Virus record (IMG/VR): IMGVR_UViG_3300028654_000384
Coordinates: 151,858 to 215,857 of that record
Direction: 5' to 3' (one strand)
DNA: 64,000 bases
Shown here: piece by piece, positions 16,905 through 47,446 of the stretch
Layout: the number at the start of each line of letters is the position of its first letter
Position numbering within the stretch: position 1 is the stretch's first letter
Program-made: the position numbers and the translations under genes
Notes under the pieces: generated by a model
What the model saw: the letters and a program-made list of their open reading frames with translations, nothing else
What the model was told of the DNA's origin: nothing
Database searches by the model: none

Positions 16905-17137
16905 TGGCATCTTATGTCGTCGTCCCACTGAAGCTGACCAAGCCTACGTCGGGTCACACCTTCGATCGCCTCGACGTTGCCGCCTCGCTGGCGGCCATGC
17001 TGCAGCCCGGCGACCGCGTCGTCAGCGTCTACCCCGTCCGTGGCCTCGTCCGCAATCAGTGGGACCCCGCGGCCACCTACTTCGAACTTGAGGCCCTCGT
17101 CGAACGAAAGGAACCCGCATCCCATGAAGAAACGTAG
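16904..17137 (+). CDS. Hypothetical protein
   Basis: TGATG coupling, GC3 bias. Confidence 0.6.
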   Translation: MASYVVVPLKLTKPTSGHTFDRLDVAASLAAMLQPGDRVVSVYPVRGLVRNQWDPAATYFELEALVERKEPASHEET

Positions 17138-17417
17138 CAAGAAGGAACGCCGCGACCTGTCACCCATCCACCCGCCCATGCCCGTCGAACAGGCCGAGAC
17201 CTATGCCCGGGCCCTGCAGGCACAGAAGGACCTCCGCGCGCAGCTGGTCAAGGCCACCCCGAAAGGGGCCGACGCGCCCTGCATCGGCCTGGCCGACACG
17301 TGCACCGGCACGTATCAGCTGTTGGTCTGGTGCAATGCGGGTCGACCCGCGGCGTTGCCCGCCACCTTCGAGGGTTTTGCAGTCGACTTTAGGGGTCACC
17401 TGCCCCGCGCACTGTGA
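17124..17417 (+). CDS. Hypothetical protein
   Basis: AAGGA SD, basic N-terminus. Confidence 0.6.
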   Translation: MKKRSKKERRDLSPIHPPMPVEQAETYARALQAQKDLRAQLVKATPKGADAPCIGLADTCTGTYQLLVWCNAGRPAALPATFEGFAVDFRGHLPRAL

Positions 17418-20963: not shown

Positions 20964-22052
20964 ATGACAATGGAACAGACCATGGAAACTGCACGCGCCT
21001 CTGCACAAATTAACGTGGGGCGGTTTTGGAAGACGCGTGTCTTCTCGTTTGTGGCATTAGCATCAATGGTGGGTGGCTGCGGCGCCATGGTGCGAGAGGG
21101 CTATTTTGTCACTACCGATTCCTTCGTTGCCCCGGCGATTTTGTCGCCTAATAACGATCTCGTCCTCGACGCACGTTTGAAGCTGGAACAAATCATGTTA
21201 CAGAAGGGTATTGCCGAACAGGCATTGACGGAAGCCGAGGGCGACATCAATGCAGGTGAACAAGCAACGATCAAGTTGATCGAATTGCGTGACACCATTA
21301 GTCATGCACTGACGTGGACCAGCAACTTGACAGGTGCGCAAGTGACGATGGGTAACGCCGATGTTAAGGTCATTGCGACACAGAAGGATGAGTTACAAAA
21401 CATGATTGCTCGTCAAGAGCAGCTAGTTGAAGACGCTAAATTGAATATGAATGGCGGGTTGATCGCGCGTCCTGATTATGACCGCGAGGTGCAGGCGCTT
21501 GACTCGCTGAAACTAGCACAGTTCGAAAATGACAGGACGCGTATGGCTAGCGACCTACAGTTGAAACAGGCTAGTATGGGTCAGCAGGCGCTACTTGCGG
21601 GTAAGGGCACCAAGATGCCGATGCCCGATCAGGTCATGGTATTGAACTCATTGATTACGGTCGAGGTGCAGTTGTTGCAGACGGAAGAATTGCAGAGAAC
21701 GAAGATTGCTGAGAAGGAAAAAGATCAGGAAGAATTGAAGAAGATTGAGTCGCTAGAGAGCGATCTGCGATCGCGGCCTATTTTCAAGGCAATTGATAGT
21801 AACGTAGATTTGAGCTTTGCACCATATTCTGCTTTGAAGAATATTGTTGTGGGTGCGAAAGTGATGAATTGTGTTTGGGGAGTTTTCAATTGTAAGGAAG
21901 TTGGAAAAGTGAAAGAAATTATCTCTGGTGAGGCAGTTCTTCCCGCAATTTTTGGAACGGGGCAAACAAGAGGACAATTTATTGCAGTTGAGCTAAATGA
22001 TGCAGATCATGATGCTTCAATGAAAAGTACGATTCTAAGAATCCGAAACTAA
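20964..22052 (+). CDS. Membrane-fusion (HlyD-like) or coiled-coil periplasmic adaptor
   Basis: N-terminal TM anchor, long coiled coil, beta-rich C-terminus; position between TolC-like and GT2 genes. Confidence 0.5.
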   Translation: MTMEQTMETARASAQINVGRFWKTRVFSFVALASMVGGCGAMVREGYFVTTDSFVAPAILSPNNDLVLDARLKLEQIMLQKGIAEQALTEAEGDINAGEQATIKLIELRDTISHALTWTSNLTGAQVTMGNADVKVIATQKDELQNMIARQEQLVEDAKLNMNGGLIARPDYDREVQALDSLKLAQFENDRTRMASDLQLKQASMGQQALLAGKGTKMPMPDQVMVLNSLITVEVQLLQTEELQRTKIAEKEKDQEELKKIESLESDLRSRPIFKAIDSNVDLSFAPYSALKNIVVGAKVMNCVWGVFNCKEVGKVKEIISGEAVLPAIFGTGQTRGQFIAVELNDADHDASMKSTILRIRN

Positions 22053-22062
22053 AGGACATCAG

Positions 22063-23805
22063 ATGGATACTATTCTTTGGCGTTTGCATGATTCCATGCA
22101 TCTTGCATGGGTTGTTATTTTTGCACTCGTAGTCAGTCTTTGTTTGCTCAACGTCCACTACATTCCTGTAGTATTTCGTACAGCATTCAGAAGGTTGGTA
22201 TCTGGCAATTCTTCACATACGCCCAAGAATATGGGCAATTGCCCTACTGGACTTGTAATCATTCCATCGCTGCTTAGAAACGAAGAAGATTATACCGCCA
22301 TCATTGCCACAGTAGAAAGTTGTGCTTCTAATCAATACCCCAATGATTTGTATATCATAGTTAGTATTGATGGGAAGAACGAGAATCAAAAATTATTTGC
22401 ACAACTAGCTAACTGGCTCGATTCAAGATCGTACTCTAACACTGTAAAACTGCACCTCACATATGATGAGGTTCGTCGTAGCAAAATGATGGCTATCGAT
22501 CGTGGGGCACAGTATATGAAAGCCCTTGTTGCTAGTGGCGCGGTGTCATCCTTTCCCACCATCTATTTTAGCATCGACGCTGACTCTATTCTTAGTGAGC
22601 AAGCTCTCAATAGAATGGCATCTCAGCTAAATACTCCACACCCAATTACCGGTAACAAAAGGCGAACTATTGCCGGAACTCCGATGGTTCACTCGCACGT
22701 GTTATGGCAAGGTTGGCGCTCATTCTTTACGATTGAAAATCAGATCTATCTCAATGTTGCTCGTATGTTTATGATGTCAGGTGTTGCTCGTAGCAATTTG
22801 GGTGTTATTCCTTACATTGGAGTGCCAGGAGCTATTTACGCTACTTGGAGTGAGATTCTATTGGATGCTCCTAAGTTTATGGGTTACATAAGATCCATTA
22901 CATTTATTGACTGGCTACGTTGGTGGGTGGGAATTCCTCTTCCTACGTTTGCAGAATCTAGCGCTGAGCCAATTCCTCAATTGTTGACAGGAAACACAGA
23001 TGATACAAGTATGGCGGTTGTAATTTCAATCTCTACTTGGCAAGACAATAGGTTTGTTCTTGAGTTGCCAAGATCTCCACTTCATGCGTTTGGCAGATTG
23101 CTTCGCTCTTGGTTTATTGAACGAACGCATAATCACGATCCAGAATCGAAAGCTTATACTTATGTTCCTCCTTCTATTAAGGGATTGTGGCTTCAACGAA
23201 AACGATGGAACAGCTCGAGAATTGAATTAAATTTGAGATTCTCAAAAGCATTTTTGTTTTGCTGGGACACTGGATTTCCGTTTATGTTTCAGCTATCTAT
23301 TGTTGGAATAATTTTCTTTCGAGTGTTGCTGACATACGTTATAATTCCATTCGTCATATTTGGTGAAGCCTCCAACGTCTTCTATTGTTTGATGGTGGGT
23401 ATGACGTTGAGTTTTATTTGTAATCTCATTCTTACATTGACCGCACTTGCAATGGATACTGAACGACGTAGATATTGGGCGGTGTTGCTTGCGTTACCAA
23501 CGGCTGGTTTGTTTTCTCTCGTGTTCGGTGCAACCGTAGGTATTTGGGGATTTATGAAAGACGTATTGTGGAAAGGAAACAATGTTAAATTCACACCAGC
23601 TTCTACGTTGATAACTGGTGGAAGTCAGCGAATTGCAATTGCATTTCGTGTTCAGCGATTCCTATCAATGTGTATTCGTTCATTACGATATGGTGATGTT
23701 CCGTTCGGTCTTTGGTGGGGATCTTGGTATGAAAGAGTGCCCTATGTTCGTAACGGTTATGCAGATTGGTCTAACAAAAAGAACAGTCAATACGTGCTAA
23801 AATGA
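22063..23805 (+). CDS. Processive membrane GT2 polysaccharide synthase (chitin/hyaluronan/cellulose synthase superfamily)
   Basis: D (SIDG), DxD (IDADS), TDD, QxxRW (QRKRW); one N-terminal and about three C-terminal TMs. Confidence 0.85.
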   Translation: MDTILWRLHDSMHLAWVVIFALVVSLCLLNVHYIPVVFRTAFRRLVSGNSSHTPKNMGNCPTGLVIIPSLLRNEEDYTAIIATVESCASNQYPNDLYIIVSIDGKNENQKLFAQLANWLDSRSYSNTVKLHLTYDEVRRSKMMAIDRGAQYMKALVASGAVSSFPTIYFSIDADSILSEQALNRMASQLNTPHPITGNKRRTIAGTPMVHSHVLWQGWRSFFTIENQIYLNVARMFMMSGVARSNLGVIPYIGVPGAIYATWSEILLDAPKFMGYIRSITFIDWLRWWVGIPLPTFAESSAEPIPQLLTGNTDDTSMAVVISISTWQDNRFVLELPRSPLHAFGRLLRSWFIERTHNHDPESKAYTYVPPSIKGLWLQRKRWNSSRIELNLRFSKAFLFCWDTGFPFMFQLSIVGIIFFRVLLTYVIIPFVIFGEASNVFYCLMVGMTLSFICNLILTLTALAMDTERRRYWAVLLALPTAGLFSLVFGATVGIWGFMKDVLWKGNNVKFTPASTLITGGSQRIAIAFRVQRFLSMCIRSLRYGDVPFGLWWGSWYERVPYVRNGYADWSNKKNSQYVLK

Positions 23806-24761
23806 AAATTTTATCGCTTATAGCTCTAGTACTGTCTTCGTGTGTAAGTAGCAATCTCTATTTTAGAGAAGTTCACGCTAAAAAGCCAACATTTTCATTA
23901 GAGGAGAAAAAAATGACAGTCATAAACAACGATTCTGTGCGTGGACTATTTGTGTGGGATGATGTTGCTAACTCAGAAGAGGAAATTACCAGTTTAGTAA
24001 CTTTTTGTAAAGTAAAGGAAATCAACGTAGTATATGCATCATTGTATAGTCACTTACTTGTAAAAAAAGATTTTGTCGCAGTTCAAAATCTACTCAATAG
24101 TTTGCATTCCAACGGAATAAAAGTTCATGCATTGTTTGGTAATTCAGATTACGGTTCCAAAAAACAATGGGTTGTTGAAAACGTTGGCGAAGCAGTAGTT
24201 CAATATAATTCAGTATCATCTGATAAAATCGATGGTGTGTTGCTAGACGCTGAGTATTGGTCTGGTAGTGCTGGACATCATACGCAAGCCGATGCGATAG
24301 GCATGATGGATCTAATAAGGGCACTAAAAATAAAAACTGGCACGCCAGTTGGATTTAGCCCTCCGTACTGGTTTGCAGATCCTAAAAATAATCAAGCGCT
24401 GGACGTTGTTTATGATGGACACACAATGAAAGAAGGTCAGCACATGATTTATGTTGCGGACTACGTTGTAGTGCAGGACTATTTTAGTGATCCACAAAAA
24501 CAGATTGAACATTTCAATCCGTGGTTTGATTTTGCAGTTTCTACCGGTAGAAATGTTGGTTTGGTGTTGGCATCAGAAGTTAGTGAGCCATCGAAACTAG
24601 CTCATGCCTATTCCTATAATAGACTACAGGTGGGTGATGAGGCGCACATGCAGTCTAGCCTGGCCAGCGTTTCGCAATTCTATACAATGAAGCACGGTGC
24701 AGACAGGGTATGGTGGGGTTGTGCTATTGAGCAGTATCGTTCGTATCGTCAGATGAAGTAA
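23802..24761 (+). CDS. Lipoprotein with TIM-barrel glycoside-hydrolase-like domain
   Basis: Lipobox LSSC; IDGVLLDAEY resembles GH18 DxxDxDxE with the middle Asp replaced. Confidence 0.55.
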   Translation: MKILSLIALVLSSCVSSNLYFREVHAKKPTFSLEEKKMTVINNDSVRGLFVWDDVANSEEEITSLVTFCKVKEINVVYASLYSHLLVKKDFVAVQNLLNSLHSNGIKVHALFGNSDYGSKKQWVVENVGEAVVQYNSVSSDKIDGVLLDAEYWSGSAGHHTQADAIGMMDLIRALKIKTGTPVGFSPPYWFADPKNNQALDVVYDGHTMKEGQHMIYVADYVVVQDYFSDPQKQIEHFNPWFDFAVSTGRNVGLVLASEVSEPSKLAHAYSYNRLQVGDEAHMQSSLASVSQFYTMKHGADRVWWGCAIEQYRSYRQMK

Positions 24762-34814: not shown

Positions 34815-36109
34815 ACAGGTTCGTTGCATCACGAAGAGGCAGCATCTATGCAGTCTCCAGTGCCCCCATCGTGGCTCCCGATGCTGTCGACACCGAAGTC
34901 GTTGAAGTACCAGACGTCCACGCTGACGTCGACACCGCCATGTTGATCACACACTTTCGGGTGCGCGGCGGCAAGGTACAACCGCGACGGGGCTCACCCG
35001 GCACCGCCAGTGCGTTGAAGTTGGCGCTGGTCGGCAACTGGAAGATGCGGTGCGGCATTGCCACGTACAGCGAGAACCTGTGGCCCGAAATCGCCAAACA
35101 CGTCGGCGACTTCAAGCTGTTCATCGAGAAGAATGAGCAACCCACTGGGCCCACCAACGTCATCGGCGACGTCGCTGTCCCACCTGAGAAGGTGCTGGCG
35201 TGCTGGCGGAGGGGCGAGCCGCTGGCCGAGCTGGTGAAGGCGATCAAGGACTATGAACCTGACGTGGTGCTAATTCAACACGAATTTGGCCTGTGGCCCA
35301 ACGCAGGACACTGGCTGTCGCTGATGAGCCAGTTGAGCAACTACCGCGTCATTGTGACGATGCACAGTGTGTTTCGACACCGTGACAAGACGATCGTCGA
35401 GGCGGCGATCCCCGAGATCGTGGTGCACCTCGAGGGCGCCAAGCGAGTGTTGAAAGAGGAGAAGGGGGTGCCCGGTGAGGTCTATGTCATCCCACACGGG
35501 TGTGCTCCAGTCACTGACGTTGAGCGCCTGTGGAATTTCTATAAGTCAGATCGAACGCTAATGCAATTCGGATTTGGCTTTAGATACAAGGGGTTTGAGC
35601 TGGCGATCAAGGCGACCGACGTGCTGCGGCGCAGGTACCCCGACGTCTTCTTCACCGCGTTGTTCAGCGAGTCGCCTTACAACTTGATCGATCACCAGGT
35701 CTATTACGACGAATTGATGCACCTCGTCGATGACCTCGATCTCCATAACAACGTGGCAATCATCCGGGGTTACCAAAGCGACACTTCGCTTGACTCCTAC
35801 ATGCGGACGAATCAGGCGATCCTGTTTCCCTACATCAGTCACCCGGAACACGAAGTCTTCGGTGCCTCGGGCGCCGCGCGGCTGGCGATGTCGAAGATGG
35901 CACCCATCGTCACTACGAGTGTCAATCACTTCAGCGACTTGCCGACGTTGAAAGCAGACACCCCTGAACAGATCGCCGATGCTCTTGACGCGATGTTCTC
36001 CAATCCGATCGCTCGCAAAGTGCAGGTCGATCGGCAACTAGCTTACTTGAACGACAACACTTGGGCTCGGGTTGGCGTCCGCTATGTAGAACTGTTCACG
36101 AAGGTGTAG
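34811..36109 (+). CDS. GT-B (GT4-like) glycosyltransferase
   Basis: CGIATYSENL, PDVVLIQHEFGLW, VTMHSV, VIPHG, FGFGFRYKGFE, FGASGAARLAM. Confidence 0.85.
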   Translation: MNRFVASRRGSIYAVSSAPIVAPDAVDTEVVEVPDVHADVDTAMLITHFRVRGGKVQPRRGSPGTASALKLALVGNWKMRCGIATYSENLWPEIAKHVGDFKLFIEKNEQPTGPTNVIGDVAVPPEKVLACWRRGEPLAELVKAIKDYEPDVVLIQHEFGLWPNAGHWLSLMSQLSNYRVIVTMHSVFRHRDKTIVEAAIPEIVVHLEGAKRVLKEEKGVPGEVYVIPHGCAPVTDVERLWNFYKSDRTLMQFGFGFRYKGFELAIKATDVLRRRYPDVFFTALFSESPYNLIDHQVYYDELMHLVDDLDLHNNVAIIRGYQSDTSLDSYMRTNQAILFPYISHPEHEVFGASGAARLAMSKMAPIVTTSVNHFSDLPTLKADTPEQIADALDAMFSNPIARKVQVDRQLAYLNDNTWARVGVRYVELFTKV

Positions 36110-36117
36110 TGTTATTC

Positions 36118-36480
36118 ATGGTCAAGCACGTAAATGAAAGGGCGACGCCTAAGACTGTGTTGTCGCGCGATAGTGACACGTATAGGCGGATCTATGACCT
36201 GCTTGAGGAACACACGTACAGCTTCATCACTGACGAGTGGAGCAAGAATCCGACTACTAATTCAGTTCGCATCGAACAACTTGAACCATTGTCACGCGAT
36301 GATGTGTTGGCACAAGCCATCAAGGACGGTGTGGCGCAAACAAAGGCAATCGACGCAGTCAAGCGTTATGAGCAACACGTATTGTTACACATCAATGATC
36401 AACGCGTCGTGGTGACCAAAAACGTGGCAAGTACAACCATGAAAGTGTTAGCTGATCATGTCGACGTAGAGGACACGTGA
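36118..36480 (+). CDS. Hypothetical protein
   Basis: Coupled to next ORF (GTGA). Confidence 0.6.
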   Translation: MVKHVNERATPKTVLSRDSDTYRRIYDLLEEHTYSFITDEWSKNPTTNSVRIEQLEPLSRDDVLAQAIKDGVAQTKAIDAVKRYEQHVLLHINDQRVVVTKNVASTTMKVLADHVDVEDT

Positions 36481-36734
36481 CCAAAGAATACCTCGATCTA
36501 AGCGACGCCGTCTTCTACGAACTCAACGGTCACAACATCATCGTCCGCGCTGACGTGCCCTACGCTGACATCGGTGAACACTTGTTGTTGTCAAAGTGTC
36601 AACGCTTCGTCGCCGCCGTCTCGCAGCAACCTTCGCAGCCCGTGTTGCTGTTCACGCTGGCAGACGGGCGCCGCTTCATCACTAGTGACACCACGCAGGT
36701 CGCACAAGACTACCTGAAGAAGCAACAGAATTGA
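36477..36734 (+). CDS. Hypothetical protein
   Basis: GAGGA SD; GC3 bias. Confidence 0.6.
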   Translation: MTKEYLDLSDAVFYELNGHNIIVRADVPYADIGEHLLLSKCQRFVAAVSQQPSQPVLLFTLADGRRFITSDTTQVAQDYLKKQQN

Positions 36735-36747
36735 CCTTCACCCGGGG

Positions 36748-37383
36748 GTGGGTTATGATCAGTCGGTGAGCGGCATAACTTCTTCTGCGGACAATAAAGA
36801 ACAAAAATTGTCGCCGGGTCAGATTAGTGGTATCAAGCGAAAGGCCCGCTTTGAAGCATTTATGGAAGCTTTATGGCCACAGATTCAGGAACTTTACTAC
36901 ATCAAACAAATGGCTTTGATTGAAGTAGTTGATGAATTACATCGTCAAGGACATCTTAAATTATCATACAGTCGTTTGCACAAATGGTTGAAGAGAAAAC
37001 ATCTGATGCAACCTAAAAAAATCAAAGTCATACAATGTGGTGTGCCATGGTGTGGTAAGATGTTTCATCCCACGAGTTCTACACAAAAGCGATGTAATGT
37101 CTGCGCACCAGATGGTGCTGCTAATAATCGTTGGAACAAATATCAGATGACACAACCACAATTTGATGAATTTCTTGTAAAACAATCTGGACTTTGCATT
37201 GGTTGTTTACGAACACTAACGCCTGGTGTCATGGGTAAAGGTCTTCCTCACGTAGATCATTGTCATATTACAGGTCGAGTGCGTGGAATCTTATGTATGA
37301 GTTGTAACACGGTGTTGGGTCAATTACAAGATGACCCATCAAGGTTACGTCGTTTGGCTACATATATTGAGAAAAATCGATGA
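36748..37383 (+). CDS. Endonuclease VII (His-Me finger) family protein, probable homing endonuclease
   Basis: QSGLCIGC..HVDHCHITGRVRGILCMSCN..LG; AT-rich relative to flanks. Confidence 0.85.
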   Translation: MGYDQSVSGITSSADNKEQKLSPGQISGIKRKARFEAFMEALWPQIQELYYIKQMALIEVVDELHRQGHLKLSYSRLHKWLKRKHLMQPKKIKVIQCGVPWCGKMFHPTSSTQKRCNVCAPDGAANNRWNKYQMTQPQFDEFLVKQSGLCIGCLRTLTPGVMGKGLPHVDHCHITGRVRGILCMSCNTVLGQLQDDPSRLRRLATYIEKNR

Positions 37384-38408
37384 CGATCCATGATCCACTT
37401 GTCAGACGTGTTTTACCTGTCGGAACAATAGATTTATGCGTCGGTGAATCGCACCTGGTACGGCAGGCACTTCGTGACACCTTCACCCCGCCGAGTACCT
37501 TCGACTTGCTAGACGTTACAAACAATTGTGATTATCAGGAACCAGAGGGTTATCCACCACTGGTACAATCGCTTGAGAGGCGTCATGGCCAACATGTTGT
37601 CATTACCGCTGGAGCAAAACAAGGATTGGCGGCATGCTTCTATGCTGCAAAGCGTATGGGTATGGACGGATTGACAATGAGAACTCCGTATTGGTCACAG
37701 ATGCCGCATGCAGCTAAGATTATGGGTCTTATGCCTCATTTTACAGATGCGCCCATCAATAATTGCGCACATTTAATTGTCTCACCAAATAATCCAGATG
37801 GCCACGTGATGTCGCTTGCCGATGCAGCAGTGTTGAAGGAGCAGTGTCGTCAGTTGGGGGTACCACTCATTCACGACGCTGCTTATCACACGCCAGTCTA
37901 TCTCAATGAAATGACGTGTGCTGACCCACTACCAGATCTGGCAGATATTACGATCTATAGCGTCGCCAAGATGTATGGGATGTCAGGTCTCCGCATAGGG
38001 TGGGTTACTTGCAAGGACTTGGACTTTAAACAACACGTCTGCGACTACGTCGAAACGACGACGGTGGGTGTGTCGGTGCTGTCACAGCGCACCGCTCACC
38101 GCATCATTCAACTGGAAGAGACGGTCCCCGGCCTCCGCGAATTGTTCACCCACCGCGCCCAACAATTACTGATCGAAGCGAAGAAAGTCGCAGCGAAATT
38201 GGACCCTGACGTGTTGGATGCAACAGGTGTCGAGCAATCGATCGGGATGTTTGGCTGGTTCAAGGTAGGCCCGCGATTCGACAACGAGATCGCGAGGATT
38301 GCAGTGGCTCACGGCGAGCACTTCGGCGATGAGACCCGCGTTAGGCTCAATCTCGCCGTTGAACCTCACCTGCTCTACGAAGCGATCAGTCGCCTCAACA
38401 GGCTGTGA
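37380..38408 (+). CDS. PLP-dependent aminotransferase class I/II
   Basis: IDLCVGE, ITAGAKQGL, SPNNPDG, IHDAAY, SVAKMYGMSGLRIGW. Confidence 0.9.
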   Translation: MTIHDPLVRRVLPVGTIDLCVGESHLVRQALRDTFTPPSTFDLLDVTNNCDYQEPEGYPPLVQSLERRHGQHVVITAGAKQGLAACFYAAKRMGMDGLTMRTPYWSQMPHAAKIMGLMPHFTDAPINNCAHLIVSPNNPDGHVMSLADAAVLKEQCRQLGVPLIHDAAYHTPVYLNEMTCADPLPDLADITIYSVAKMYGMSGLRIGWVTCKDLDFKQHVCDYVETTTVGVSVLSQRTAHRIIQLEETVPGLRELFTHRAQQLLIEAKKVAAKLDPDVLDATGVEQSIGMFGWFKVGPRFDNEIARIAVAHGEHFGDETRVRLNLAVEPHLLYEAISRLNRL

Positions 38409-45398: not shown

Positions 45399-45434
45399 GT
45401 GAAACAAGCTGACGTAGCCTGATATAGTACTTGA
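45399..45434 (+). promoter_or_regulatory. Promoter variant upstream of tRNA cluster
   Basis: TGAAAC-17-TATAGT. Confidence 0.55.
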
Positions 45435-45445
45435 TACCGGCAAGA

Positions 45446-45520
45446 CGAACCGTAGCTCAGCATGGTTAGAGCATCGCACTGATATTGCGAGGGTCAGGGG
45501 TTCGACTCCCTTCGGTTCGA
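45446..45520 (+). tRNA. trnI: tRNA-Ile(GAT)
   Basis: Full cloverleaf; TCGCA-CTGATAT-TGCGA; TTCGACT; CCA not encoded. Confidence 0.9.
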
Positions 45521-45751
45521 CGACGAAATCACACAAGAAGAAATCATGAATACCCAACCCGCACAGAAAAAGCTCGTAAAGCAGTGGCAGCGTTATGCTG
45601 TTGCTGCCAATCAAGATACGTGAGCGCGGAGCCTCTCAGCTTCGCAAACGCTCCGAAGCTGGTGAGATGAAGGTGAAGAAAGAGCCGACACCGAACCAGC
45701 CGAGGAGGAAAGGAACTTCCCTCGGCAATCGTCGTTTCGACACAACACACT

Positions 45752-45832
45752 GGTGTGCTATACCGCTATGGAGACGGGGCAGTCTGTAACACTGTCGCTT
45801 AAGCTCGCAGGGTTCGATTCCCTGGCGCACCA
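45752..45832 (+). tRNA. trnY: tRNA-Tyr(GTA)
   Basis: GGTGTGC/GCGCACC; CTGTAAC loop; long variable arm; TTCGATT. Confidence 0.9.
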
Positions 45833-45882
45833 CGACTGCGATGACGAAGGTCATCACGATCATTGACAATCTGCGTTCCTAT

Positions 45883-45956
45883 TGCTCGATAGCCAAGTTG
45901 GTACGGCAGCGCACTGTTAATGCGCCCATGCGCAGGTTCGAATCCTGCTCGAGCAG
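45883..45956 (+). tRNA. trnN: tRNA-Asn(GTT)
   Basis: GCGCA-CTGTTAA-TGCGC; TTCGAAT; G73. Confidence 0.9.
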
Positions 45957-45957
45957 C

Positions 45958-46028
45958 TCGGGTATCATACAGTGGTAGTATGACTGACTCTGACTCAGTT
46001 CACGGACGTTCGAATCGTTCTACCCGAA
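45958..46028 (+). tRNA. trnQ: tRNA-Gln(CTG)
   Basis: ACTGA-CTCTGAC-TCAGT; TTCGAAT. Confidence 0.85.
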
Positions 46029-46029
46029 C

Positions 46030-46102
46030 GGGCTCGTAACTCAATTGGTAGAGTACTCGGTTCTTACCCGAGAAGTTGAAGGTTCGACTCCTTTCGGGCT
46101 CA
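46030..46102 (+). tRNA. trnK: tRNA-Lys(CTT)
   Basis: CTCGG-TTCTTAC-CCGAG; TTCGACT. Confidence 0.85.
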
Positions 46103-46103
46103 C

Positions 46104-46178
46104 CTCCTCGTAGTTCAGCGGAATTAGAACGTCGGCCTGCGAAGCCGAAGGCCGTGGGTTCGAGTCCCACCGAGGAGA
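46104..46178 (+). tRNA. trnR: tRNA-Arg(GCG)
   Basis: TCGGC-CTGCGAA-GCCGA; TTCGAGT. Confidence 0.9.
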
Positions 46179-46275
46179 CGTGGCACCAGTAACTCAGTGG
46201 GAGCAATCTCATACCCTTCCCTTGACGAAGGTGTAGGTGAACAAGTGCCACTGCATGTTGTATGATTCAACTCAC

Positions 46276-46345
46276 GGAGGAGTAGCTCAGTGTAGAGCAG
46301 TGCCTGTACCGGCACAGGTCGTAGGTTAAACTCCTGCCTCCTCCA
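46276..46345 (+). ncRNA. tRNA-like RNA with 6-nt anticodon loop (TGTACC) and TTAAACT T-loop
   Basis: Perfect acceptor GGAGGAG/CTCCTCC, D-arm GCTC/GAGC, stem GTGCC/GGCAC. Confidence 0.75.
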
Positions 46346-46351
46346 CGATAC

Positions 46352-46422
46352 GGGAGAGTAGCTCAGAGAAAGAGCAGTGCCCTTGCTGGCGCAGGTCGGT
46401 GGTTTAATTCCATCCTCTCCCA
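46352..46422 (+). ncRNA. tRNA-like RNA with 6-nt anticodon loop (CTTGCT) and TTTAATT T-loop
   Basis: Perfect acceptor GGGAGAG/CTCTCCC, D-arm GCTC/GAGC, stem GTGCC/GGCGC. Confidence 0.75.
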
Positions 46423-46443
46423 CCGTCACTTCACGTGACGCAT

Positions 46444-46519
46444 GCCCTCGTAGCTCAGTTTGCAGAGCGCCGTCGATTTTAGACGGAGGTCGGTGGTCCG
46501 ATTCCATCCGAGGGCTCCA
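46444..46519 (+). tRNA. Atypical tRNA, nominal anticodon TTT (Lys), lacking U33, T-loop TCCGATT, CCA encoded
   Basis: GCCCTCG/CGAGGGC; CCGTC-GATTTTA-GACGG. Confidence 0.6.
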
Positions 46520-46531
46520 CATTCAACACAC

Positions 46532-46603
46532 GGATTCAGAACTCGAGTGGCAGAGTTCCCGGCTTTTACCCGGGTAGTGACGGTTCGAGCCCGTCTGGAT
46601 CCA
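46532..46603 (+). tRNA. trnK: tRNA-Lys(TTT)
   Basis: CCCGG-CTTTTAC-CCGGG; TTCGAGC. Confidence 0.85.
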
Positions 46604-46679
46604 CGCAGACGAGTGACGCGGTTCACTGAAGCTTCATACGCTTCAAACGCCATGGTTCGACTCCGTGGGTCTGCAACCA
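46604..46679 (+). tRNA. tRNA with CAT anticodon (Met/Ile2/initiator-like), atypical
   Basis: GAAGC-TTCATAC-GCTTC; C1:A72 mismatch; 6-bp T-stem; CCA encoded; no GGG/CCC anticodon stem. Confidence 0.7.
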
Positions 46680-46683
46680 CTTT

Positions 46684-46756
46684 CACCCCGTAGATCAGCG
46701 GCAAGATCGCTTGCTCGACACGCAAGAGACCGTGGGTTCGAGTCCCACCGGGGTGA
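46684..46756 (+). tRNA. trnV: tRNA-Val(GAC)
   Basis: CTTGC-TCGACAC-GCAAG; TTCGAGT. Confidence 0.9.
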
Positions 46757-46886
46757 CGACGCGAATGAGCGTCAGTGTAAGTAACTAACAACAGTACACA
46801 TTGATATGGGTAGGTGAAAGCCGTCTCGGCCGGGACGATGAGTAACCACAGTACCTAAGCACTTCGGTGCTGGTGCAACCAAACAT

Positions 46887-46963
46887 GGGGCCAACAGGCG
46901 AGTCGCGCAGCAAAGCCAACATGGAAGCTGAGCGCACGGCGGGTTCGACTCCCGCTGGCTCCA
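46887..46963 (+). ncRNA. 77-nt RNA resembling the tRNA-like domain of tmRNA (no mRNA-like domain)
   Basis: GGGGCCA/TGGCTCC with G3.U70, A73, canonical T-arm GCGGG-TTCGACT-CCCGC, no D-stem, long helix in place of anticodon arm. Confidence 0.55.
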
Positions 46964-47031
46964 CGAGTGACACCTACTGGATATTGCTAGCATCAAAAGT
47001 GGTGTGACATCGGGGAGAGACCCGACAATTT

Positions 47032-47102
47032 GGGGCGTTGATCTACCGCGATGATTCCTGACCTGCAATCAGGCCGACCGGGTTGGATTCCCGGACGCTC
47101 CA
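47032..47102 (+). tRNA. trnA: Atypical tRNA-Ala(TGC)
   Basis: GGGGCGT/ACGCTCC with G3.U70; CCTGA-CCTGCAA-TCAGG (C33); T-loop TTGGATT. Confidence 0.7.
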
Positions 47103-47115
47103 CTCGTTGTGAATT

Positions 47116-47186
47116 GGTGATGTGCGCCACGGGAGGCGACTTCCCTGTCTAGGAAGCGTACGCGGGTTCGAATCCCGTCATCATCG
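47116..47186 (+). tRNA. trnD: tRNA-Asp(GTC)
   Basis: CTTCC-CTGTCTA-GGAAG; TTCGAAT; G73. Confidence 0.85.
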
Positions 47187-47187
47187 C

Positions 47188-47262
47188 AGGGGTATCATTC
47201 AGCGGCTAGGATGTCCGCCTCCAAAACGGATCACCTCGGTTCGAGTCCGAGTGCCCCTGCCA
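47188..47262 (+). tRNA. trnW: tRNA-Trp(CCA)
   Basis: CTCCAAA loop; TTCGAGT; G73 plus encoded CCA. Confidence 0.85.
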
Positions 47263-47272
47263 CTTTTCTCAC

Positions 47273-47340
47273 GTCACTGCTTCGGCGGCCGAAGTGAACC
47301 ATGGGCACATCGCGCGCACGTTCGAGTCGTGCCGGTGACA
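47273..47340 (+). pseudogene. Degenerate tRNA (acceptor and T-arm intact, anticodon arm unpaired)
   Basis: GTCACTG/CGGTGAC; GCACG-TTCGAGT-CGTGC. Confidence 0.5.
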
Positions 47341-47369
47341 CACATAAATAGGAACGCAGGTTATCACAC

Positions 47370-47446
47370 TGGCCACTCGTCTAAAGGCAGGACCCCGCGC
47401 TTTGAACGCGGATGAAATGTGGGTTCGACTCCTACGTGGCCAACCA
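47370..47446 (+). tRNA. trnQ: tRNA-Gln(TTG)
   Basis: TGGCCAC/GTGGCCA; CCGCG-CTTTGAA-CGCGG; CCA encoded. Confidence 0.85.

Follow-up and report, generated by a model that had tools for sequence, protein, structure and literature searches.

A tag-less mini-tmRNA in the tRNA cluster of a soil jumbo phage

A 77-base RNA gene in the tRNA cluster of an uncultured soil jumbo phage was identified as a stripped-down tmRNA, which retains only the tRNA-like half with its alanine identity and carries no tag message. The gene belongs to a conserved and mostly unannotated phage family, which suggests that these phages interfere with the host's rescue of stalled ribosomes, a function that is inferred from sequence and structure. 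The window analyzed here is a 64,000-nucleotide stretch of DNA that makes up the last 64 kb (positions 151,858 to 215,857) of the 215,857-base IMG/VR virus record IMGVR_UViG_3300028654_000384, estimated by CheckV to be 63% complete. Near-identical contigs of 359-361 kb exist in soil metagenomes, and the closest cultured matches of the phage are below 32% in protein identity.

The element is located at window positions 46887-46963 (+), and an earlier note, made from the sequence alone, described it as having an acceptor stem with G3:U70, A73, a T arm, no D stem, and an irregular helix capped by a 15-nt loop. Every one of these features was found at those positions, and the observation is thus confirmed. 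The 5′ strand of the 7-bp acceptor stem (GGGGCCA, 46887-46893, with G3 at 46889) pairs with TGGCTCC (46956-46962, with U70 at 46956), and the discriminator A73 is at 46963. CCA is not encoded, as the next bases are CGA. The acceptor stem is followed by a single-stranded D-loop analogue of 7 nt (ACAGGCG, 46894-46900), in which no D stem can be drawn, and which has A8 rather than the U8 of the tRNA-Ala genes and a conserved GG at 46897-46898. The GG aligns throughout the family and A8 is present in most members, and the Rfam tmRNA consensus likewise has G7-A8 and a GG in an unpaired D loop. A central, P2a-like helix (46901-46911 with 46927-46938) consists of nine Watson-Crick pairs, one G/A mismatch, and one bulged C, and is capped by the 15-nt loop AAAGCCAACAUGGAA (46912-46926). 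Its 3′ strand runs directly into the T stem, leaving no variable loop, and the T arm is GCGGG-TTCGACT-CCCGC (46939-46955), matching positions 347-363 of the tmRNA model. The MFE and centroid folds agree, but the single-sequence fold is not significant on its own (z = -1.57), and the evidence that the structure exceeds chance is comparative. The element was not called by ARAGORN, and no match to the Rfam tRNA model RF00005 was listed, even in a 91-base search at E up to 10.

The Rfam comparisons that the earlier note had proposed did not by themselves identify the element. The tmRNA model RF00023 aligns end to end with the message domain deleted, and with seven D-loop positions deleted as well, but the score was only 20.5 bits in local mode and 29.1 bits in the global genome search, against a curated gathering threshold of 47 bits. 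The mitochondrial tmRNA model RF02544 gave no match at E up to 10. When the same search was calibrated with ordinary annotated tRNA-Ala genes of three unrelated phages, these scored 23.7, 24.4, and 30.8 bits. The score of the window copy therefore reflects only the shared alanine acceptor and T arm and proves nothing by itself, and it was rejected as a discriminator.

The element lies within a one-strand array of 15 ARAGORN tRNA genes (45446-47446, +) that holds all tRNA genes of the record, between tRNA-Val and a tRNA-Ala(UGC)-like gene (47032-47102, +). The array is probably transcribed as one or two polycistronic transcripts; a promoter-like site lies at 45399-45428 and no terminator-like site lies on the + strand near the element, although the site counts are not above those of shuffled sequences. 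The tRNA-Ala(UGC)-like gene, the only remaining cloverleaf Ala acceptor of the array, was missed by ARAGORN but scores 38.8 bits on the Rfam tRNA model. It has G3:U70, C33 instead of U33, a degenerate D arm, and a UUGGAUU T loop, while relatives have canonical tRNA-Ala(UGC) genes at this place. Two adjacent tRNA genes (46276-46346 and 46352-46424, +) have good cloverleaves (Rfam 52.9 and 51.2 bits) but only 6-nt anticodon loops (UGUACC and CUUGCU), and could not be assigned by ARAGORN (Tyr or Val; Gln or Ala). Relatives carry tRNAs with 8-nt or 6-nt anticodon loops at similar places in the array, so the trait recurs in this phage clade, and frameshift-type decoding or non-decoding roles are possible. 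Other degenerate pieces include a 68-nt unit at 47273-47340 (+), with an acceptor-like stem (GTCAC.. with ..GTGAC), a CTTCGG/CCGAAG hairpin, and a T-arm-like hairpin (GCACG-TTCGAGT-CGTGC) but no cloverleaf, located where relatives have tRNA-Gln(CUG), which may be a relic or another tRNA-like RNA. In a 96-nt gap of the array, an uncalled tRNA-like remnant (46180-46257, +) has a 7-bp stem (GTGGCAC with GTGCCAC) enclosing a D-arm-like TAACTCAGTGGGAG and an anticodon-like hairpin (CCTTC-CCTTGAC-GAAGG) but no T arm. A 25-codon micro-ORF (MNTQPAQKKLVKQWQRYAVAANQDT; 45546-45623, +) lies between tRNA-Ile and tRNA-Tyr, and as similar peptides (..KQWQ..AAA..) are encoded at the same place in the relatives L027, L030, and L031, it appears to be conserved. 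Elsewhere in the window, the G+C content drops sharply to 0.41 (22001-24000) and 0.47 (36001-38000), against about 0.58-0.62 elsewhere; the first dip covers a 580-aa ORF (22063-23805) with no Pfam match, and recently acquired DNA is possible.

In order to find relatives, the phage collection was first searched directly at the DNA level with the array and with the element, and later with the variant from locus L082, but nothing was found. A pattern of acceptor stem plus T arm retrieved only a near-identical contig and an unrelated tRNA-like gene (L005), and a search of viral contigs for loci related to the dNMP kinase gene just upstream of the array gave no relative. A protein word search with the same kinase, followed by retrieval of the encoding contigs, was successful and gave more than 130 homologues (49-84% identity) on metagenome contigs of up to 361 kb. 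Six syntenic loci show the same array order: Ile, Tyr, Asn ... Lys, Met, Val, Ala(GGC), Ala(CGC), Ala(UGC), Asp, Trp, Gln, Gln. A scan for acceptor-plus-T-arm units left uncalled by ARAGORN identified homologues of the element in three of these loci (L025, L028, and L030), where they lie beside intact tRNA-Ala genes, whereas the other three jumbo relatives (L024, L027, and L029) have no copy, so the element is dispensable in some backgrounds. Just after tRNA-Trp, L027 (14298-14384) and L030 (14949-15041) share another uncalled and mutually similar tRNA-like element of about 87-93 nt, with an acceptor stem, a T arm with GGTTCGAT, and a conserved interior (CGAGGAAAG ... CTACGAGCA), which is not similar to the mini-tmRNA. 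A jumbo-phage relative (L025 2354-2815 and L026 2354-2815) encodes a homologue of ribosomal protein L7/L12 (PF00542) about 8 kb upstream of its tRNA array, which is another sign that the clade manipulates translation.

All copies share the loop motif AAAGCCGACAAUGGA, and scanning for this motif next to a T arm gave 20 viral contigs, 28 metagenome contigs, of which 22 were confirmed by the covariance model described below, and a single hit in 185,579 bacterial genomes, which was not confirmed by the model. Eight pattern hits in metagenomes and genomes (L047, L055, L056, L059, L062, L065, L071, and L074) are chance matches according to the model. Copies identical to that of the window occur in seven further contigs from other samples. 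Many of the hits are Streptomyces cluster BE phages; 82 records in the phage collection hold the element, which is unannotated in most of the records listed, as for example between tRNA-Val and tRNA-Leu in LukeCage. In Streptomyces phage GiJojo (PP725410), the copy (R2 model, see below, 59.7 bits at positions 1503-1580 of locus L086) is overlaid by gene 44, annotated as a hypothetical protein (17023-17265; L086 1501-1743), and this CDS call is probably wrong at least at its 5′ end.

In total, 24 distinct homologous sequences, not counting GiJojo, were aligned over 77-79 nt. Of the cells, 91.8% form standard pairs against 71.8% in shuffles, 18 of 25 pairs show compensatory changes, none of 500 shuffles reached the observed values, and slid registers drop to 30-52% paired. 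G1-G3 and the terminal TCCA are invariant, and G3:U70 is present in 24 of 24 sequences, while acceptor pairs 4-7 covary. All 11 pairs of the central helix vary with compensation and the helix length is constant. The family consensus of the loop is AAAGCCGACAAUGGA, with an internal CC/GG mini-stem, and the loop bases AAAGCC.ACA..GGA are invariant or nearly so; the window copy has one G-to-A change and a 1-nt deletion. The window lineage itself shows compensatory changes, as acceptor pair 7:66 is A:U and the second T-stem pair is C:G, the latter being A:U in most relatives. A covariance model (R1) built from 12 sequences, leaving out the window copy, L030, and DS6A, matched the window copy over its full length (1-77 of 77) at 65.0 bits (E 2.4e-13) and L030 at 77.1 bits, whereas no ordinary tRNA exceeded 33.4 bits. 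Translation from the loop to the 3′ end showed no conserved stop codon in any of the three frames. The stop codons in the BE copies are by-products of the stem sequence, and the GCC frame, which reads ADNG..., is open in 23 of 24 sequences.

The relation to tmRNA rests on the less-derived members of the family. L075, L066, and L069, and in part L073, carry the canonical tmRNA D loop GGnUUCGAC and the 3′ GGAC, which form the tandem G.A pairs (5′ GAC with 3′ GGA) at the base of P2a in the Rfam consensus. These four members score 67.9, 62.3, 61.5, and 52.4 bits, respectively, on RF00023, above the threshold, with the whole message domain (about 306 model positions) deleted. Several BE copies keep GAC...GGA. 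The window copy, with GGCGAGUC in its D loop and no GAC/GGA, and its nearest relatives (L044 and L032) have a shortened D loop without this motif and are thus derived members, and the ability of the window copy to bind SmpB is less certain than for its relatives. A TLD-only tmRNA has previously been reported from mycobacteriophage DS6A (PMC4131195), and we located this element at JN698994 28478-28557, where it scores 43.2 bits on RF00023. On the family models, DS6A scores 37.4 bits (R1) and 38.8 bits (R2, the second family model), against a best tRNA of 33.4 and 32.0 bits, which is only marginally above the tRNA background. The copy in GiJojo has the UUCGAC/GGAC signature and a loop, GAAAGCCGCACGCGGAGC, that shares CCGCACGCGG with the DS6A loop, an indirect link that is convincing by eye but rests on this one bridging sequence. 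T-arm matches of DS6A in Bordetella, Achromobacter, and Caulobacter phages turned out to be permuted full tmRNAs and not TLD-only forms.

In complete relatives, the mini form is not a replacement for a lost tmRNA. BE phages carry a full-length tmRNA about 11 kb downstream (93-96 bits; tags ANSNVAFALAA and ANSNVASAYALAA), in agreement with published BE annotations (PMC5764925), and the 99%-complete jumbo relative G003 carries one too (87.8 bits; tag ANDNGALPLRLAA). In the phage of the window, no full-length tmRNA was found in the 63%-complete 215-kb record, and none above the RF00023 threshold in an overlapping 99.8-kb record (G006). No SmpB gene was found in the record of the phage itself (G000), in the phage records G002, G003, and G004 (a 39%-complete fragment), or in LukeCage or DS6A, so any SmpB must be that of the host. 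Searches of the phage's own record for peptidyl-tRNA hydrolase and RF-1/ArfB domains were also negative. A CCA-adding enzyme of the PolyA_pol family (115.5 bits, 379-aa open frame) is encoded outside the window (G000:C1:86957-87337; locus L084), which fits tRNA-like genes that lack an encoded CCA.

The earlier note had interpreted the element as a minimal tmRNA-like RNA, with an alanine-identity tRNA-like domain and no tag reading frame, and this interpretation is supported, not by the Rfam score of the window copy itself but by its homology to the family. The note did not take into account that a phage precedent exists (PMC4131195, PMC11915505), that the window copy has lost the UUCGAC/GGAC signature, and that complete relatives also carry a full-length tmRNA. 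Its functional suggestions, rescue of ribosomes without tagging or sequestration of SmpB, remain inferences. What the analysis establishes is a conserved, structurally constrained, phage-specific RNA gene with invariant alanine identity elements, derived from the tRNA-like domain of tmRNA, and without an anticodon or a tag frame. The remainder of the model, which we favor with moderate confidence, is inferred, including expression, alanylation, SmpB binding, and entry into stalled ribosomes. In this view, the RNA would be transcribed with the tRNA array, cut out by RNase P and 3′ trimming, and receive CCA. AlaRS recognizes G3:U70 even in minihelices, and host AlaRS would charge the RNA with alanine for delivery by EF-Tu. 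The TLD-SmpB complex of tmRNA enters stalled ribosomes, and together with host SmpB the RNA would likewise enter ribosomes stalled with an empty A site and accept the nascent chain; peptidyl transfer to a TLD-only tmRNA is reported to occur in vitro (Shimizu and Ueda 2006, as cited in PMC3895274). Because there is no message to resume on, the chain would get no degradation tag, and the net effect would be either tag-free release of stalled ribosomes or competition with the tagging tmRNA for SmpB and stalled ribosomes. The coexistence with a full-length tagging tmRNA in complete relatives is awkward if the only role is to block trans-translation. The conserved loop, held at a fixed distance by a helix of constant length, probably contacts SmpB or the ribosome.

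A less likely alternative is that the RNA acts as a passive SmpB sponge that shuts down host trans-translation irrespective of charging and ribosome entry. A TLD-only molecule is reported to strongly inhibit tmRNA in E. coli, perhaps by titrating SmpB (Mao et al. 2009, as cited in PMC4131195 and PMC11915505), this inhibition did not need charging (PMC4131195), and none of the phages examined encodes SmpB. However, the invariance of G3:U70 and A73 in all 24 sequences, while the neighboring acceptor pairs covary, indicates selection for alanylation, which a sponge would not need, and favors a charged, ribosome-entering RNA. A sponge would also starve the full-length tmRNA that complete relatives encode, and it does not explain the strictly conserved loop. 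It is more doubtful that the element is an alanine-accepting tRNA mimic working outside ribosome rescue, such as a decoy for a tRNA- or tmRNA-targeting host defense nuclease or an Ala donor for an aminoacyl-tRNA-dependent transferase, with the conserved loop as the recognition site. Its position in a large phage tRNA array, a type of array proposed to counter tRNA-degrading defenses (PMC5764925), its conserved loop, which implies a specific partner, and its coexistence with a full tmRNA, from which it may differ in function, are in line with this. On the other hand, family members keep the tmRNA-specific D-loop and tandem G.A motifs, which are features of the SmpB-binding fold rather than of tRNA, and no conserved neighboring protein gene exists, as the flanks differ between BE and jumbo phages. 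A non-functional relic, either a decayed tRNA-Ala or an internally deleted tmRNA pseudogene, is very unlikely. The array does hold other degenerate tRNA-like pieces (47273-47340 and 46180-46257), the element lies where relatives have tRNA-Ala genes, and its single-sequence fold is weak, but it is conserved across two unrelated phage groups with compensatory changes in every helix and an invariant loop, and relatives hold it alongside intact tRNA-Ala(GGC/CGC/UGC) genes, which rules out a decayed tRNA-Ala. An ordinary or intron-containing tRNA-Ala, in spite of G3:U70, A73, the canonical T arm, and the position in a tRNA array, is refuted by the lack of a D stem, of a 7-nt anticodon loop, of anticodon-loop geometry in the conserved loop, and of any ARAGORN call or listed RF00005 match, and by an interior of 45 nt, far too short for a bacterial group I intron.

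A more speculative and improbable reading is that the mini-tmRNA is not just a truncated competitor but a distinct second component of a phage-run rescue system. The invariant loop reads GCC GAC AAU GG, that is Ala-Asp-Asn-Gly, which echoes the ANDNG start of the tag on the full-length tmRNA of a complete relative, and GAA(A)GC follows the P2a 5′ strand in both phage full-length tmRNAs; this similarity to the tmRNA PK1 and resume region is noted only as a lead. The loop, held at a fixed distance by the helix of constant 11-pair length, could be a vestigial or minimal message-like element, or a mimic that occupies the upstream-sequence site of SmpB or the empty decoding center. The RNA would then be a self-contained, tag-free ribosome-release factor, or a switch that decides which stalled ribosomes get the tagging tmRNA of the phage, working alongside the full-length tmRNA rather than against it.

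Until now, TLD-only tmRNA in phages rested on a single sequence, that of DS6A, and one heterologous experiment. The present element shows that this form, although scarcely studied, is a conserved and selected gene family, spread over at least three kinds of phage (uncultured soil jumbo phages, 82 cluster BE Streptomyces phage records, and GiJojo), with an invariant alanine identity and an invariant loop, and often located beside a full-length phage tmRNA. As the BE phages and their Streptomyces hosts are in culture, the old question of what phages gain from manipulating trans-translation becomes testable. The result also corrects annotation, as the gene is unannotated in nearly all BE records listed and current tmRNA and tRNA finders miss it, and it warns that a sub-threshold tmRNA score cannot separate such elements from tRNA-Ala.

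Among known systems, the closest is the TLD-only tmRNA of mycobacteriophage DS6A (tmRNA Website tmID 11587), a phage-encoded RNA of about 80 nt with a G3:U70 acceptor stem, A73, a T arm, an unpaired D loop with GG, a short P2a helix closed by a loop with an internal mini-hairpin, a short linker before the T arm, and no tag frame, and whose loop shares GAAA.CCGCACGCGG with that of GiJojo. The window element matches this layout, being a phage-encoded closed tRNA-like domain within the range of about 65-85 nt, with P2a closed by a loop and no tag frame. The DS6A element is nevertheless a distant relative, as it keeps UCGAC in the D loop, which the window copy has lost, its loop lacks the GACAAUGG core, and DS6A is a 60-kb temperate phage with no tRNA array. 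Full-length bacterial and phage tmRNA (SsrA, RF00023) shares with the element the alanine-identity acceptor stem, the T arm with a canonical T loop, A8, the unpaired D loop with GG, and a P2a helix leaving the junction next to the T stem, but the element has no pseudoknots, no resume codon followed by a stop codon, and no tag, with about 300 model positions absent, and complete relatives carry a separate full-length tmRNA with tags ending in LAA. The CDS-less organellar tmRNAs of jakobid and oomycete mitochondria (RF02544), and the about 65-bp plastid forms in Mallomonadaceae, are likewise reduced to the tRNA-like domain without a tag frame and are thought still to act with SmpB (PMC11915505), but theirs is an independent reduction in organelles, and they lack the conserved AAAGCCGACAAUGGA loop as far as the literature describes them. 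With tRNA-Ala, the element shares G3:U70, A73, the T arm, a position among the tRNA-Ala genes of the array, and an acceptor stem identical to that of the tRNA-Ala(GGC) gene of relative L025, but it has no D arm, no anticodon arm, no variable loop, and A8 instead of U8.
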